A DNA stretch of 64,000 nt. Source: Podarcis pityusensis (Eukaryota). The notes under the pieces are model-generated. The model was given only the letters and a program-made list of their open reading frames with translations. It searched no databases and was not told the origin of the DNA. The position numbers and the translations under genes are program-made. Every line of letters begins with the position of its first letter. Within the stretch, counting starts at the first letter, position 1. Location of the stretch: the NCBI GenBank assembly GCA_964106645.2, contig OZ067046.1. One strand, 5' to 3'. Below are positions 1-45,569 of the stretch, one piece after another.

Positions 1-899
1 ACATAATACAGTCACTAAGGCTCCTTCTGTCAACATTCTTAAAGTCCAAAGTCGATCTCTATTTCACACAGTTCTTATCTTGCAACTGGAAAAACCCCAG
101 CTCCACTCTTGTAACTGTTTCAAAAGCTCTCTCTAGAGGGAAACAGTCTCCACTTGTATCAATCCTTTCAAACACAGTTTAAACTATAAAGATAGTTTCT
201 TTTACTACTTTTTAAACGCAGATGAGTACAATGGAAACAATATATTTTTCTTATTGCTAGCTGTCAAAAAACGTCACTCTTTCTGGCAGCCCGTTTCCAG
301 GTTCGGAGCAGTGGTAATTTGGTTTTTCACTCTCTCCTGCAGGCTCACTAGGTCCAAAATTTCCCCCCTCTTCTCTTGCTTCCAAGGGGGGTTTAATAGT
401 TTTAACCAATGGAGATTTAATCCTTTACAAAAATAAACTTTCCAAGGCTTTAACTTGCAACTTCTTTGCTTCAATCTGTTTACAAAAAAGGAAGGCGGAC
501 TTCCTGTTTAGAACCTTCCCGTTTCGATGCCAAATTAATGAATTTAAGGATCTAATTTTCCGTTCTACTCACGGGTAGTTGTTTAAAATCCAATTGTCCA
601 CAGGAAAAAGTCAGCGCTCTCCGGCAACAGCGATGCGGCTTCACTCCGTGAAAGAAGCAGTCAATTCGAAGCACCGCGCCACTCACCCCACTTCACTCCG
701 GATCCCCAAATCAGGGTTTCCCTGCAAGTAGGGGAGGCGCAAAGGGTGCCAGCCGAATCCCAAGTTCATAGGCTTCTCCCGCCTGTGATTTCAGTGGGTC
801 TCCGCCTTCGCCGTGGCGGTCAGACCCTAATTTCCGCGGAGCAAATTCCTCCCAATCGGAGGAACTCCGCCATTGCCTGGAGGCGCCAACCTGGAAGTC
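1..899 (-). mobile_element. Probable 5' end (5'UTR/ORF1 start) of an L1-clade LINE, truncated by the window edge
   Basis: Minus strand begins GACTTCCAGGTTGGCGCC...AATGGCGG, resembling the GACTTCCGG/GGCGCC start of fish and squamate L1 5'UTRs. It is CpG-rich over about 500-900, then A-rich on the minus strand. Family assignment is from memory. Confidence 0.45.
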
Positions 900-1547
900 T
901 GATTTTGTGTGATTCCTGGAGGGGTCCTTTGCTCACTCAGTAGCGGAACAGACCAGACCAGCAGCTGGGTCAGCCAATCTCTTTCTAATGAATGCAGCAC
1001 AACATTCCCCACTTAACTTATTTTGATCCACTATGCTGCTTTCCTAGAAAATCTAAAAGGTTTCTACCTATCTGGTTTCTTGGCTGCCTTGGTAACATCT
1101 CTTCTGTTGATTGCCCAAAGCCACAGATATCTTTGCTCAGTACTTTTTGCTCAAACGTATTCTTTCTGGCAGCTTTATTGCTTCTAAGAAAGTCCCATAC
1201 ATTTAAATGGATCTTGCTTCCAAGAAAGGCATGTGTGGGAATGGGCTTAAAACAGCAAACACCTGCACACACTCCCTAAAAACACAGGATGAAATATAAC
1301 ACAGTTAAGTATGCTGATTTCCATTTACAGCATTTAATTAGGAAAGGAAAGGTTTGATTTTCACTGATTCGTACCCACATTTCGGAAATTGTATTGTGAA
1401 TGCATGTTCCCCCAAAGACACTCTGGAAAATAAATTACTGTAGTGTACAAAGATTGCATAAGAGGCATATGTGGAACTATTTTTCCTCCTTTGACTTGAA
1501 GCCCAAATTTAACTCTGGTCTTCTCTATCCCCATACCTTTTGTACAG

Positions 1548-1685
1548 GTGAATGCAATGATAATTGCTTCTGTATTTTCCTGCTTCGTCACTCTACTTGT
1601 AATCATCTATACGTCTATAACATTAGAGTATGGTGAAAAATATGAAGAGTTTGACAATGTGTCCTCTTACCATCACCCAGCCGTT
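1548..1685 (+). CDS. MS4A-like gene exon: TM helix plus loop
   Basis: ccttttgtacag|GTG...GTT|gtaagt; 138 nt; hydrophobic stretch MIIASVFSCFVTLLVIIYTSITL. Confidence 0.8.
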
Positions 1686-4314
1686 GTAAGTATCAAACTA
1701 TCTAGTTTCTGCCCTTTTGAATACATTGCACACAGTTTAGGAGCGACAGAGTAACTAGCACACCCAAAGGTCTGTCACTCACATCAGTTAGGGCAGAAGA
1801 TGGTGCAGGAAAATCTCTCTGTGTGTTTCTTTACTGAACAAGGTCCAGGCTGGCACAGCAGAGGCAAAATCATTGGATGGCTCAACTCTGCCCCCTTCTA
1901 GGTCCTGAAATGCCTTTTATGGCAGGTATTGTTGGGAGTTCCATAGTAAAGGATGCCTCCCACAGGCACAGGCACTGGGGCAGATCAGGGTTGGGCCTGC
2001 CTTTTATATATTACTTTCATTTTATCCATCCAATTTGAGGATATTAATTGACACCATCAGTTTGTATACATGCATAGATCATATATGTGGTTGCTCAACT
2101 ATTTATCAGTTACTATTTATTGTTGTTTTTCACTTGTTATTCCTTTTCATGTAAAATAATTAAAATATAAAGAAGAGAATTTACAGGTGCTTTAAAAACA
2201 ATACCCACACCGCTCCTAAGGTTGAATTGCATTTTTTTGGATAAAGGGTGTGTGTGTGCTCATTTTCTGTGTTGCAGGCATTTGTGCTTGGTAAACTTGT
2301 AGAAGGAGCCAACATCACACTACTGATTGCATCGCTTTTCAGTGCTTTTATTGTGCTGATTATTGCTTATTTGAGTTGCCGAAGTCTTCCATGTTGTTCA
2401 TGCTATGACAGTGTCACTGGACTTGTAAGTAGCAACATTGCCATTAAATATGGTGGGTTTACTTGTCTTGTACTGGGAAGGAAAGCCTTTTGTGATTCTG
2501 CAAAAACATTTTTGGACAGTTTGATATGAGGTTGCCATATTTCCTTAACTCCCCCTCCCCTTCAACTAGTTAAGCCCAAAATGCCCACAAAACTAATTTT
2601 TTGAATTGTCATTTGGAAACAAATGATTTGTGGACACCTCTTATTATAGCATTGTATACACTAAACAGCTATGAACCTCATCAGTGCTGTGATGGTAAAT
2701 AACTGCCATCCTTATATAAGCTTCTGTGCACTTCCTAAAGGAAGGGGTATAAATTGTATATAACTGCCCCTTCTGCATGTTTTTCTTGACAGGTGTGTGC
2801 ATAAAATGTTTTTTACTAGGTTCACAGTTCTATGGGTGGTATTCAGCTAAGTTTAATTCAGAGTAGATCCTTTGAAATTAATGAACATGACTAAATAAGT
2901 TCCATGAATTTCAGTCAGTGTAACCTGAGTGAATACCACCCCTTGTGTTTAAGGTTTGCCAATTATGTAGCACTTACCACTTCTAACGTTGACTTCTCAT
3001 TGTTTGATAACTGCCTTATTTATGCATCTCTTAGATAGATATGTTTGTTCAGCTTCTTATCTGGGTTATTGAATGTGAATGGTTTGAAATAAATCTCTTA
3101 ATTATGATAATGGTAGCTGCAAAAAAATTAAGAAATACTTTTGTAAAGGAAAATATGGTAAACTGTGGTGGGCATTATATGATGAATAGCTTCTTTTTCT
3201 TGAACTCCAGAACTTTTTATTTTTAGTCTTGTTTGTTATTATACCATTGCAATTACTTTTGGTTAACCAAATTACAAAATGAAACCGTGTTTGTCTCGAA
3301 GACTGCACATTCTAAGATCAGTGCTATTCTCAGGTGAACCTTTTTAGCAATCTCATGCTCTCATTCTTAGGAACGGCTAGAACCTAATGAAGACCAGCTA
3401 CAAATTGCAGAATTAGTTTGCATTCCATCTGGTATGTAGGTGTTCTCACTGTTTTACTTGAAAATTAATTTCAGATTTACTAAATATGTAAGTCAAATAA
3501 TGAATATGTAAGGAAGACATTTGGGCTATATAAATATTATTTAAAATCATAATAATTAAAATCCATTTCCATAAAAGCAATCTAACTACAATTACAATAA
3601 CTAGGCAGTAGTGGTTAAAAATAAAATCCAGCACATTACTTTACTGCTGGTTTTAGTTTAATTTGTTCTTATTAATATTGAACTGTAAAACCCAACATAG
3701 CTCTTTTAATCAATAGTGGGTTAGAACAGAAAAAATTAAAAGATAATAAAGAAGCCCTGGTAATATTCCTTGGGAGGAAGAAAAAAAAATCTGTGTCATT
3801 GGTGCCCACAATAATAGATATTGATGGTAGACCAAGGCCAGGCCTCTGAAGCCAATGTTCCATCCTGGGCAGATTTCTGAGAGTGTAGGCTGTCCTTCAA
3901 ATAAAGCCCTACATTGTCTAGGGCTAGGTTAAGTGTCAAAACCAGTCCTTTAAATGGGGCCCAGAAACGAAATGGCAGATAATGCATTTGGTAAAATATG
4001 GGTATTATGTGTTCCCAATGCTTGATCCCTGCAAGAATCTGGGCAGCTACCTTCTGCACCAGTGAAAGTTTCTAAACCATTTTCAAAGGCAGCCCCATAT
4101 ATAACCAGGGTATTACAACAGTCTAGTCTGCATGTAGCCAGCACACATAATCAAGGCAAAGTTTGCTTTCTGCAGCTACATATGCTCACTGTGTGTGTTT
4201 TCTATTCTAGGTCAAGTGGATACAATTTTTAATTCTCCTGTAAAACTTTCAGATTTAGATATGGAAGCTGATGATGACATGCCCAAACCACCTCCATATA
4301 TCAGGATGACTTAA
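1548..4314 (+). CDS. Uncharacterised MS4A/CD20-like membrane protein, 3' part (4 exons: 1548-1685, 2278-2424, 3371-3431, 4211-4314); 5' exons not found
   Basis: All junctions are polypyrimidine-AG / GT(AAGT or ATGT). Intron phases 0, 0, 1 join into one open frame: VNAMIIASVFSCFVTLLVIIYTSITLEYGEKYEEFDNVSSYHHPAV-AFVLGKLVEGANITLLIASLFSAFIVLIIAYLSCRSLPCCSCYDSVTGL-ERLEPNEDQLQIAELVCIPSG-QVDTIFNSPVKLSDLDMEADDDMPKPPPYIRMT*. AATAAA at 4463-4468. Confidence 0.8.
2278..2424 (+). CDS. MS4A-like gene exon: last TM helix plus Cys cluster
   Basis: ttttctgtgttgcag|GCA...CTT|gtaagt; 147 nt; ITLLIASLFSAFIVLIIAYLSCRSLPCCSC. Confidence 0.8.
3371..3431 (+). CDS. MS4A-like gene exon: cytoplasmic tail
   Basis: ctctcattcttag|GAA...TCT G|gtatgt; 61 nt (3n+1), supplying exactly the phase the last exon needs. 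Confidence 0.72.
3790..4147 (-). mobile_element. Degenerate L2-clade LINE ORF2 C-terminal fragment (intronic)
   Basis: Minus-strand frames give RLDCCN... and QKVAAQILAGIKHWEHIIPIFYQMHYLPFRFWAPFKGLVL, matching the L2 RLDYCN / QNAAAR / HITP.L..LHWLP...FK pattern, with frameshifts. Confidence 0.75.
4211..4314 (+). CDS. MS4A-like gene last coding exon (acidic patch, PPPY, stop)
   Basis: ttttctattctag|GT CAA...CCA CCT CCA TAT ATC AGG ATG ACT TAA; AATAAA about 150 nt downstream. Confidence 0.75.
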
Positions 4315-4462
4315 ATATAAATTCTAGGAGAATTTTTTTTTTAAAGCTCTTTATAACTTAATAATTTTACTGAAAAGTTTGTACAATTCTTAAAAGAAAT
4401 GACTGACCACTCTGAAGAGATCCTCAGAATTTCAAGACTGGTGACCTATTTTCTGTACAGTT

Positions 4463-4468
4463 AATAAA
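4463..4468 (+). terminator. Polyadenylation signal AATAAA of the MS4A-like gene
   Basis: Canonical hexamer about 150 nt after TAA, followed by T-rich sequence. Confidence 0.5.
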
Positions 4469-4781
4469 CTTAATTCTATTTTCATAAATTTTAATTTAGC
4501 CCCATAGTGTTTATTTGACTCCTGCTGTGTAATAGAATCTTCAATAATAGCAAGCATCCTTTGAACCAGAAAAATTGTCATGGGCAAATGAGTCTTCCAA
4601 ATGCAAATTTGCTTGTTCAAATGGGAATGGTCTGCAGAAATCATACGATTCCGTGTGAAATCTGCTAGCACAGAAAGCAAAGAGTGGGCAGACAAATACT
4701 GTGAATATTAGCCAATGCACTCCACTCCAATGATTTCACCAATGCCCCATGTTAGAATTGATGGATTGCATTTTGTATGAA

Positions 4782-5148
4782 GTTGTTGTTGTTTAGTCGT
4801 TTAGTCGTGTCCGACTCTTCGTGGCCCCATGGACCAGAGCATGCCAGGCACTCCTGTCTTCCACTGCCTCCCGCAGTTTGGTCAAACTCATGCTGGTAGC
4901 TTTGTGAACACTATCCATCCATCTCGTCCTCTATCGTCCCCTTCTCTTTGTGCCCTCCATCTTTCCCAACATCAGGGTCTTTTCCAGGGAGTCTTCTCTT
5001 CTCATGAGGTGTCCAAAGTATTGGAGTCTCAGCTTCAGGATCTGTCCTTCCAGTGAGCACTCAGGGCTGATTTCCTTAAGAATGGATAGGTTTGATCTTC
5101 TTGCAGTCCATGGGACTCTCAAGAGTCTCCTCCAGCACCATAATTCAA
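4782..5148 (-). mobile_element. BovB (RTE-clade) LINE, 5'-truncated 3' end
   Basis: Encodes RVPWTARRSNLSILKEISPECSLEGQILKLRLQYFGHLMRREDSLEKTLMLGKMEG, then CCATGGGG.CACGAAGAGTCGGACACGACT and a (CAA)n tail. Confidence 0.92.
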
Positions 5149-6769
5149 AATTTCATCAAAGAGGCATCAGCTTTCATATCATATGCTTCATCTGGCCTAA
5201 ACTAAAGAAATCAATTTGAACATATCCAATCTTGCCCATTGGTCTTCTTCCACAGATTCATTTTTAAAAGCCAAATACATATATAACTCCAGCAATAAAA
5301 CACTTTTTAAATAGCCATAGGTGTAGCTGCCTGAGGCAAGCAAGAATCTTTCAGGACATGGAAGCTTCACAGCACTCATAACAATGTGAATGTTTCTAAC
5401 TGACAGGCAATTACAGTGGGGAAAAATGAGACGAAAGCAGAATTTTACTTGCTAGCATTTATTAGTTTAAGACAGTGGCACGTACTTGTGGTAATTTAAA
5501 TAAATCTTTCCTTTTGCTTTTAGAAAGAACAATTGACATTTTGTAGGTAAAGCATTATTAAATGGGGAAGCATTTTGGATTAACAACACTCTGTTTAAGA
5601 TACTATCAACGTAACTGATGCCGATAAGATGACAATGCTCAATGTTATTTTGCAATAATAAGATAGAACAATTCTATACTATACTATAGCAGTTTAAACA
5701 GTTTCAAAATAACCATTTCATCAGTATTTATGGGTGAAATCCAACATTAGTTACCAGACCTATCCTGGGAGCAATACAGGGATGTTGTCCTATGTGTTGT
5801 GGCCACATGATTAATTCTTCAAAACTCTCTTCCTTCTGTATATAGAACCCTGGTTTTTATTTTTTACTTTCTTTAGGATATGATTTAATGCACACATTAT
5901 AATTACATTTGCATTAAAAGCTATCTTTTACTTAAATGGGTTAAGAAAATGAAGTAAACAGGTGAGTCCTCTAAAGAGGAGTGTAAACTATATTTGAGAA
6001 ATATTTTAGAAATATACATTTATGAACATTTTTTCATTAAAAATCACTGAAGAGTCTTCGTATTAAATAAATGGTTTCTAGAAAGTGCGTAAACCAAAAG
6101 TAAAGACACAAAACAGAGTAAAAAGAACTTCCCTTTTTCAAGTGTTGTAGAAAAACTAAACAAGAAAAACCCTGTCACTTCTGGTTCTAAGCAAAATAAT
6201 AATAATCCTATATAAACTTGGACACAATCCTCTCACACATTTGGCCCACAATGCAAGTGGATTGTGTTCCTTGCATTTTACTGATTAAGGTGCAATCAAT
6301 AGATTTTCCTAAACATAAAAGCTAGTGTTTTATACTTCACTATGCTAATGTACGACAGAATAGCACCTAGTATTTGGCAATTACAATTACAGTAATTGTA
6401 CTAATATGTCTGCCTTCAATAGCATTACAGTAAAGGTTAAAACTTAGTAAGACATTTAATAAGCAGCACACAGTAGATATAAGCAAATTGGATTTGGAAT
6501 ATTAAGTAAATTGTTCTTTAAGTGTTAGCCTATAATACTGATACTCCATTCTCTTAGAATAATATGTAACGGTATCTTGAATTTCATTGCTTTCCCTTTT
6601 TATGTAACCAAAACTTATATGCAAGCTAACACGAAATGTGAAATGTAGGACACATGTAAAATAAATGAAGAATGAGGATCAAAAAGGTTACAATATGGTA
6701 CTGAACAACAGAGTTAAGATCAACTCCTACACAAGGTTCACTTATACTAAGGTTTGTAATGCTTACTTC

Positions 6770-8889: not shown

Positions 8890-9330
8890 CTAACACCAAC
8901 ATGGCATGGCGGGTTTTACTGCAGGTTCTAGGTGAATTGTGTTATCGGGTAGCTGACTAAGCATGAGTGGCTTGTGACTCTTGAGCTTATGAGCCAGCGT
9001 CATAAATATGGCTTCCACATGATCATTGTCATTAGGGTTTTTAGCAGATGTTTCAAACAGTGGCATGCTATGAGTGTCAGCAAATTTCTGAGCCATGTCC
9101 GTAGGGACCTGAATTGCACTTCTCAGATCGCATTTATTTCCAACCAAAATCCGGGGTATATCATTGGTGAGCAAGTGTTGTTTGCATTCCTCGATCCACA
9201 GTGGCAAACTATGGAAACTGGCAATATTTGTCATATCATATACAAAAACGACTGCGTGTACATTCCTGTAATAGTGCTGTACCATGCTCTTCCTGAATCG
9301 CTCCTGCCCTGCTGTATCCCAGAGCTGAAT
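8890..9330 (-). CDS. RAB33B: RAB33B coding exon 2
   Basis: tctag|ATT CAG CTC TGG GAT...TGT TAG. Confidence 0.96.
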
Positions 9331-10862
9331 CTAGATGTACCGAGAAGGGAGAGAAACAAGAAAAAAAATGATTTCACTCATGCTGGTGGAAAGGCATAAT
9401 TTCAACTTTAACTCAACAGTACTTTTATATTGCTATGATTTCTGTTCATGAGGGTCTTTGAGGTCAGTGGTTTTATATCTCAGCAACAGCAACAAAACAT
9501 AAATGCAAACTTTTGCAGTGAAGCTTCCTGCAAATACCTTTTTATACATCAGCTTTTCAAAAACAGTTATACTAAATATTAGTAATTGTGTGTCTTTCAC
9601 TGTAGATGAAGGTATTACAGGAATTAAGAGCTTGCCAAGAAATTGACATTGCAACATGAGTATTAAGTTTAATTAGGATCTACGTGATTTAAAAATCAGC
9701 ATGCTTACATTTCAATTAAAAAGCAGAGTTGTCATTGCTTAACATAACTGTACATGTATAAGGATGACACAACTTTCCATTTAAGCACTAGCTGGTACCC
9801 AAAGGTAACCAGGAATTCCATGCAGCTGGGTTCATGGAAGCACTGCCTCTCTGCACCCAGCACAGAAACCACATGTTGCTAGAGGTGGGATGAAGAATTC
9901 TGCAAGGCCCTAGCAATCTAGCGTTATGTGTTTGCAAACTTTTGTGAGCTTATTTAAACACCGGAATAAAGAGATACAATAGGCCATAAGTTTGACTAAA
10001 TATGAGCACATCTTCAAAACTGTGTGATGTTAATACATGTTCAGCACTCAGCACATGAACAACAGATAGACCAAGGGGCTCAGAGGTGCAACTAACAGCA
10101 TGTTTACAGGTGCAACTATAGGGCTCAGCGATGAAGCTCACCGGGGGACTTCCTCAAGTTACCGCACTCAGATTGTTGCAAACACAAATCTTGATTCAGG
10201 GGAAGCAGCTGAGATACAAGTATAACAAATGACCTCCATATTTTTGGCCTTGTGTCAGCTCCAGGCAGCATAGATGAGCAACAGGACTGGAGTTGCCCAC
10301 TCCAGTCCTGCCAGGTGGCCTGGTGTAAAAGAGGTCATAGATCATAGAGTTAGAAGGGACCACGAGGGTCATCTAGTCCAATGCGGCAATGCAGGAATCT
10401 TTCACCACCTGCACCTATAACAGTATTGCAGCAGAGGAAATCTCAGCAGATGTCGCTTGCCGAGGCAAAGCACCTGCCTTTTCTGCACACACCTGTTAAA
10501 GGACTCCCTGCCACTTTGCATCTACTACGCGCCAGCTGCAAGGCAGCCGGCAGAACAGCCCTGAGCCTAGCAGAGGAAAAGCAGCCCGAGGAGGCGACCT
10601 CGGCTTTCCGCACCTTGATGCGCTCCCCGTCGATGTCGACGGCGCGTTCTCGGAAATCCACCCCGATGGTGGCCTCGGTGCGCTCCGGGAAGCGGCCCGC
10701 GCAAAAGCGGAAAGTGAGGCACGTTTTCCCCACGTTCGAGTCCCCGATGACGATGATCTTGAAGATGCGGGAGCGCGCGGGGGGCAACGTCCCCGGCCCC
10801 GCGTAGCTGCTCGACAGGCTCAGCTCCAGCGACGACTCCACCTCGGCCGCCGCCGCCGCCAT
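8890..10862 (-). CDS. RAB33B: Ras-related protein Rab-33B (2 coding exons: 10614-10862, 8890-9330; 229 aa)
   Basis: GDSNVGKT P-loop, [25 protein letters not shown] and C-terminal CWC prenylation motif; 249+441 nt; adjacent to NAA15 as in other vertebrates. Confidence 0.97.
10335..10400 (-). mobile_element. CR1-type 3' tail (short SINE/LINE fragment)
   Basis: Reverse complement of GGACTAGATGACCCTCGTGGTCCCTTCTAACTCTATGATCTATGA. Confidence 0.7.
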
Positions 10863-11400
10863 CGCCTCCGGGCCCGCCAAGGCGCCTTCCGCTGCGTCGA
10901 GTCACTCGCGGCTTAGTCGCTCAGGCCCAACCTGGCGGAGGGATTCGCGTCGCGGCGTGGAGGCGAAAAAGGCCCGCGCGCCCCCGTCGCTCGCTCGCGC
11001 GCGCTCATTTCCCCCCTCCCGGACAAGCCGCTTCGCTTCCGCACCTGAGGGCGGCGGCTGCCGCTTCACGCGTGTTAAGCCACGTAGGAGGAACAGCTCC
11101 GCCCCTTTCGCGGCATAGGCCGGGCCTGATAGGCGAAGAAGGCGAGGCCATGGAAGGGGGCGTTTCCGCTCGTCTCAGCGGGGGAAAACAGGGACGACGG
11201 GAACACGAAAGCTCGCGAGAAGTGGGATGTTATGGACGCGTCTTTAAATGGCGGGTTGGGGCGGCAGCGGCCATCTGGCTGTCATTGTTCGCCAGCGCTA
11301 AGCTCGTGCTAGTCTCCTCAGTACAGGAGCGTCTCACACCCCTGGCTCTCTCTCTCGTCCCCACACGACAAGCGGGAGTCACCCGGCGAGACTGATGGGC
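10540..11400. promoter_or_regulatory. CpG island / RAB33B promoter
   Basis: High GC and CpG; ETS-type CTTCCG sites, GC box, GCTCGCGAGA (11211-11220), YY1-like AAATGGCGG (about 11246-11254). Confidence 0.85.
10614..10862 (-). CDS. RAB33B: RAB33B coding exon 1
   Basis: ATG at 10862 ([13 protein letters not shown]...GERIK)|gtgcgg. Confidence 0.95.
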
Positions 11401-13459: not shown

Positions 13460-13599
13460 NNNNNNNNNNNNNNNNNNNNNNNNNNNNNNNNNNNNNNNNN
13501 NNNNNNNNNNNNNNNNNNNNNNNNNNNNNNNNNNNNNNNNNNNNNNNNNNNNNNNNNNNNNNNNNNNNNNNNNNNNNNNNNNNNNNNNNNNNNNNNNNN
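13460..13599. other. Assembly gap (140 N), within the probable NAA15 3'UTR
   Basis: Run of n. Confidence 1.

Positions 13600-14551: not shown

Positions 14552-45569
<31,018 letters not shown>

Follow-up and report, generated by a model that had tools for sequence, protein, structure and literature searches.

Four short exons lie downstream of RAB33B in a 64-kb stretch of lizard DNA (64,000 nucleotides, referred to here as the window), and they raise the questions of which gene they belong to, how widely this gene is distributed and what its protein may do. An initial annotation, made from the sequence alone, described them as a hidden, poorly characterised gene for an MS4A/CD20-like membrane protein.

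Exons, transcripts and the intronic insertion

The window contains the 3' four of the six coding exons of a real, spliced and expressed gene. The features of this part of the locus are as follows:

1548..1685, + strand: coding exon 3 of 6 (138 nt, residues 76-121), encoding TM3 plus a second loop that is acidic and has no cysteine
2278..2424, + strand: coding exon 4 (147 nt, residues 122-170), encoding TM4 with the invariant N133, then the cysteine cluster
3371..3431, + strand: coding exon 5 (61 nt, residues 171-190), encoding tail with conserved L173, E184 and C187
4211..4314, + strand: coding part of exon 6 (104 nt), encoding residues 191-224 plus TAA
4315..4468, + strand: 3' UTR, with AATAAA at 4463-4468 as its end
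1..899, - strand: the stretch of a ~2.1 kb retroelement-like insertion (intron 2) that falls within the window, outside the mRNA

The four exons with their boundaries, the phases 0, 0 and 1, the stop codon TAA and the AATAAA signal were all located where the initial annotation had placed them. The exons, which sum to 450 nt with TAA included, have AG acceptors with pyrimidine tracts and the donors GTAAGT, GTAAGT and GTATGT; they encode the two long hydrophobic helices that had been described (peak Kyte-Doolittle values of 2.4 and 2.6).

Transcript evidence was taken from public runs in which 5-21% of the words of the region were present, and their contigs were placed on window positions 1000-4760. 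The predicted joints 1685/2278, 2424/3371 and 3431/4211 (all GT..AG) were present in contigs of all four runs (4 studies, 3 organisms); these runs are classed as RNA by software guess alone, and single contigs nonetheless join exons without introns. In two runs the exons were joined on one contig each (974 and 1055 nt) with 434-446 extra letters 5' of position 1548, and therefore further exons lie outside the window. The spliced contigs end at 4465-4494, near AATAAA, and contigs cannot prove an RNA end. One contig of run X1, deeply covered across intron 3404-4197, departs from the window sequence at a GT repeat and was taken to be chimeric. Within another intron, a short dispersed repeat (2826-2915) draws many unrelated contigs. 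The reading of the exons as a pseudogene or artefact was ruled out by the spliced joints in four studies and by the comparison of exon layout and dN/dS given below.

The two remaining coding exons (165 and 60 nt; TM1-TM2) were located in the P. lilfordi assembly beyond the retroelement, where they had been expected; their distances from the first window position, on its 5' side, are ~4.7 and ~2.4 kb. This ~2.1 kb insertion (P. lilfordi L010 3725-5826) sits between the TM1-TM2 exons and the window exons, occurs in P. lilfordi, is missing from P. raffonei, and has a target-site duplication, an AATAAA-containing A/T-rich end and a 233-aa stop-free frame that matched weak coiled-coil families only. 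It is likely an L1. A further repeat (window 4780-5150, with a short second copy at 34301-34354), presumably a look-alike of the squamate Sauria SINE / Bov-B type, is shared with P. raffonei, and positions 13460-13599 of the window are 140 N.

Orthologues, synteny and the mammalian line

In a lacertid protein of 224 aa, the window exons account for residues 76-224. Their peptide is identical to P. lilfordi CAI5784345.1 over 148/148 scored residues, and to the Podarcis raffonei RefSeq model LOC128421083 at 146 of 148 residues; at the DNA level, the window is 98.8% identical to the P. lilfordi assembly from which CAI5784345.1 derives. It is virtually certain that zebrafish zgc:113425 and chicken LOC422442 (XB5734924 in Xenopus) are orthologues of this lacertid (Podarcis lilfordi-like) gene, and that the gene is single-copy, encodes a 224-aa four-helix CD20-like (PF04103) membrane protein, is conserved in jawed vertebrates with RAB33B and SETD7 as its neighbours, and is under purifying selection.

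Searches were run exon by exon or from database proteins by identifier. The TM4 exon retrieved 48 representatives from birds, frog, fish and sharks, with the label uncharacterized or zgc:113425, and the profile and turtle-protein searches returned 377 and 290 proteins, respectively. Members were found in a chimaera (Callorhinchus), sharks, ray-finned fish, coelacanth, lungfish and all three amphibian orders, as well as in tuatara, lizards, snakes, turtles, crocodiles and birds. This range, from chimaera to birds, bears out the proposal that the gene was kept in non-mammalian vertebrates and contradicts that of a lineage-restricted gene, since the distribution is pan-gnathostome. Neither is the gene hidden: it is modelled in GenBank (P. 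lilfordi) and in RefSeq (other lacertids and hundreds of vertebrates), so the gene model is already public and its existence is no new finding. The family is unnamed and seemingly unstudied, and the databases assign no function to the zgc:113425 orthogroup entries. The description of the gene as poorly characterised was apt: paper searches on its identifiers gave no study of the gene, only a chicken QTL table and a qPCR detection of LOC422442 in the day-old chick diencephalon (PMC9911055), which is the sole printed expression datum found.

Some database entries carry annotation errors (P0023, P0124, P0194 and P0234). One model is fused to RAB33, a frog member is labelled SETD7, and the Varanus and P. 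lilfordi members bear the name of chloroplastic ribosomal L23 (in GenBank, '50S ribosomal L23, chloroplastic' for P. lilfordi). RefSeq isoforms of 202-203 aa, 20 residues shorter, recur in birds, an amphisbaenian and a frog (P0197, P0198, P0203, P0208, P0224 and others), which suggests skipping of a 60-nt exon. In one Logan contig, apparently from a bird (P0007), a MamL-1 domain is joined to the gene from TM3 onward; this fits read-through splicing from MAML3, which we take to lie upstream in the same orientation.

Lizard, turtle, grouse, seadragon and elephant shark share one set of exon sizes (165/60/132-138/147/58-61/104-113 nt) and phases (0,0,0,0,1), and protein identity from shark to lizard is ~50%. 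The dN/dS ratio was not near 1, being 0.33 versus turtle (dN 0.28, dS 0.85; dS is saturated at greater distances) and 0.21 versus P. raffonei (five changes in all). Squamates, turtles, archosaurs, amphibians, lobe-fins, ray-fins and cartilaginous fish each came out as a single branch when 62 members were placed in a quick ML tree, as expected for a single-copy orthologue. No second CD20-like gene was found in the 64-kb window, and none was called in the fetched loci of relatives.

The anticipated synteny was observed in three lineages: SETD7 and a RAB33-type GTPase flank the gene in seadragon (SETD7 > gene < RAB33-type GTPase, convergent), SETD7 lies upstream of it in grouse, and RAB33B is convergent with it in Podarcis. 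In turtle and elephant shark, neither SETD7 nor RAB33B was called within 10 kb of the gene. In the window, the two exons of RAB33B (8890-10880) and, upstream of them on the same minus strand, matched NAA15 exons (23941-45569) were recognized. A non-coding stretch upstream of the start codon is 74% identical between lizard and grouse (L004 5593-5748, L005 9565-9721) and is a probable promoter or first non-coding exon; the turtle orthologue has a 5' non-coding exon.

No named mammalian member occurred among the best 120 of 377 and the best 120 of 290 matches, which extended down to ~55% identity with turtle, sharks included. No gene was called up to 10 kb downstream of RAB33B (a part of the RAB33B-SETD7 interval) in three marsupials and a sloth, and a search for remnants by HMM in the 10-kb flank of two of these mammals gave at best 5 bits or less, on a scale where three of the four window exons gave 20-72 bits and the short one 5.7. 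Loss of the gene on the mammal line is probable for marsupials and placentals, and less sure for monotremes.

Membership in the CD20-like superfamily

Comparison with Pfam CD20 (PF04103), proposed with the initial annotation, placed full-length members well above the gathering cut-off (P0191: 79.2 bits versus 27.9, profile 2-156/156). All of the 106 orthologues matched PF04103, and exon 1548-1685 by itself reached 15.6 bits (E=0.017). The predicted model has helices at residues 11-38, 49-69, 73-110 and 119-157, with pLDDT mostly 85-94, and a tail with pLDDT <50. Its structural matches were FcεRIβ (Z 16.0; Foldseek E 3.7e-4), CD20 (Z 12.3) and two chains of dystrophin-glycoprotein complex entries, 9c3c_n (Z 15.4, rmsd 2.7) and 8yt8_S (Z 14.4), which were taken as sarcospan from the entry titles; helical bundles reach Z ~13 by chance. 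The best solved relatives are 13-18% identical. The family profile matched the FcεRIβ sequence over TM1-TM3 (E 8.6e-4). An Atlas search with one exon gave weak unnamed matches only, and the Atlas fold search gave nothing informative. Because the Pfam cut-off is passed, the four-helix model matches FcεRIβ and the profile match agrees, the protein is placed in the CD20-like superfamily. It probably represents a separate lineage of the superfamily, set apart from the classical MS4A-cluster genes by its separate locus, its short N-tail and its lack of loop cysteines and of an ITAM. Of the initial assignment, the four-pass CD20-like character with the TM3-loop-TM4 layout stands, and the attribution to classical MS4A probably does not.

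Conserved motifs and a possible role in sorting

Sequence motifs were counted in 106 orthologues; those located in the window are as follows:

1656..1664, + strand: NVS sequon (N112), not conserved
2377..2409, + strand: juxtamembrane motif CRSLPxCxCYD, conserved after TM4
4252..4278, + strand: acidic patch before the terminal motif, composition kept (3-7 D/E in 105/106)
4288..4311, + strand: terminal extended PY / YxxΦ motif, here PPPYIRMT

The juxtamembrane motif is a candidate palmitoylation or metal site. Within it, C155 (98/106), C161 (106/106) and C163 (105/106) are conserved, and C160 occurs in 25/106; the CC pair was therefore rejected as a family motif, and the cluster noted earlier after the last helix is present in the sequence without its CC pair being conserved. 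Together with C187, these three cysteines are each 92-100% conserved. The NVS sequon noted in the loop is also present but confined to P. lilfordi: the proteins of other lacertids have D instead, and position 1656 shows A>G in 4/4 runs. It was rejected as functional. An N-x-T/S at N133 is found in about half of the orthologues; since N133 is invariant without S/T and stands at the TM4 start, it is probably structural. Other near-invariant polar residues of the helices are Q21, D35, S86, Y96 and T100. The second loop is acidic (net -1 to -6 in 105/106) and its sequence is poorly conserved.

The tail is variable outside its motifs, with L173, E184 and C187 conserved. In the terminal motif, Y220 and YxxΦ are present in all 106 orthologues, Arg at Y+2 in 100, PxY in 99 (P218 and P219 in 99 each) and the full [LP]PxYxxΦ in 90. 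A conserved, predicted cytoplasmic [LP]PxY, which is the feature of a PY-motif NEDD4 adaptor, was accordingly found in 90/106; the strict form is missing in 16, several sharks having PAPY, and YxxΦ is kept in these. A YxxM PI3K site (15/106 only) and an ITAM (0/106) were rejected.

Conservation of this motif in an otherwise variable tail was counted in favour of an adaptor function. The protein may be a palmitoylated tetraspan adaptor with both termini cytoplasmic, in which the helical bundle would pack onto another membrane protein in the manner of FcεRIβ and sarcospan, and the cysteines after TM4 would be palmitoylated. The acidic patch and terminal [LP]PxYxxΦ could then bind WW domains of NEDD4-family ubiquitin ligases and/or mu subunits of clathrin adaptors, and the protein would thereby direct itself and its partner into endocytosis or endosomal-lysosomal sorting. 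There are precedents for such a motif: the PPxYxxL extended PY motif of ENaC binds Nedd4 ligases (PMC2582799), and PPxY in the CD20-homologous ENTREP/FAM189A2 recruits ITCH to CXCR4 (PMC8811627). We give this adaptor model slightly less than an even chance. The overall explanation that joins the identity of the gene, a putative sorting adaptor and the mammalian loss is the best available, and we regard it as evenly balanced. A bolder version is rather doubtful. In it, the published MS4A phylogeny overlooked an unnamed single-copy CD20 branch whose age is that of the jawed vertebrates; the protein would link a NEDD4-family ligase to a specific membrane cargo, and the gene would have disappeared at the root of the mammals.

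The 16 orthologues with YxxΦ and without strict [LP]PxY fit a plain sorting signal equally well. The protein may instead have a structural role in a membrane complex, as a tetraspan subunit or chaperone similar to sarcospan, whose tyrosine motif is an AP-complex signal for its own sorting and recruits no ligase. Sarcospan ties with FcεRIβ as top structural match, and YxxΦ and the arginine are kept more strictly than [LP]PxY; nevertheless, P218 and P219 persist amid a variable tail and a YxxΦ signal needs neither, and we consider this reading unlikely. Somewhat less likely still is a channel or chemosensor like MS4A/TMEM176, in which an oligomer would conduct or gate cations, or would bind a small ligand through its loops. 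The polar helix residues and the acidic second loop would suit such a protein, but the loop is poorly conserved in sequence and the channel role of the MS4A family is indirect. Calcium entry by CD20 and MS4A12 is the family precedent for it (PMC2826416).

The remaining two readings have low probability. The conserved cysteines C155, C161, C163 and C187 might form a small cytoplasmic metal site, acting as the functional module instead of lipid attachment, and both models show strands near 161-165 and 185-189; pLDDT is, however, ~50 or lower there, the cysteine spacing fits no Pfam zinc-finger family, and cysteines directly after TM4 are typical palmitoylation sites, which makes this improbable. 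It is more improbable still that the gene is the orthologue of a moved or diverged named mammalian CD20-like gene (MS4A, TMEM176, TMEM196, TMEM212, SSPN or ENTREP). The Pfam family is held in common, and the Atlas neighbours include other chordate CD20-like clusters (0.92-0.93) and TMEM196 (0.89), but an identity of 13-18% to the best solved relative contrasts with ~50% from shark to lizard, and no source uses a mammalian gene name, bar one generic MS4A-like label.

The majority of MS4A genes evolve fast and have expanded within lineages, which blurs the original job of the family. The branch described here is the opposite, with one copy, ~50% identity from shark to lizard and the same exons and neighbours, and provides a stable reference for the ancestral function, testable in zebrafish, Xenopus and chicken. 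It occurs in elephant shark, in which a 2010 MS4A/TMEM176 phylogeny reported no MS4A or TMEM176 gene, with one MS4A in birds (PMC2826416). The published tables of that phylogeny do not list the identifiers of the gene, and the branch was therefore apparently missed by the survey. If the mammalian loss is true, it is a clean case of gene loss.

Among known systems, the zgc:113425 orthogroup is the same gene: residues, exon boundaries and neighbours match, and the window gene differs solely in its private N112 sequon and the intronic insertion. The MS4A family shares PF04103, the four-helix fold and phase-0 introns, and the short 60-nt TM2 exon resembles the 57-nt exon of MS4A genes. Nevertheless, identity to MS4A/FcεRIβ is 15-18%, and the protein has just ~12 residues before TM1. 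CD20/FcεRIβ commonly have cysteines in their second extracellular loop, which have no counterpart here (0 cysteines in loop 2 in 106/106 orthologues), and the C-terminal ITAM of FcεRIβ is found in none. MS4A genes are clustered and lineage-expanded (PMC2826416), whereas this gene is single-copy and slow-evolving at its own locus. Sarcospan has the same fold at 13-14% identity, and its match excludes the longer tail with the PY motif. ENTREP/FAM189A2, likened by function alone, is also a CD20-homologous membrane protein with a cytoplasmic PPxY, but it has 450 aa, carries two PPxY motifs in a long tail and is described as single-pass.
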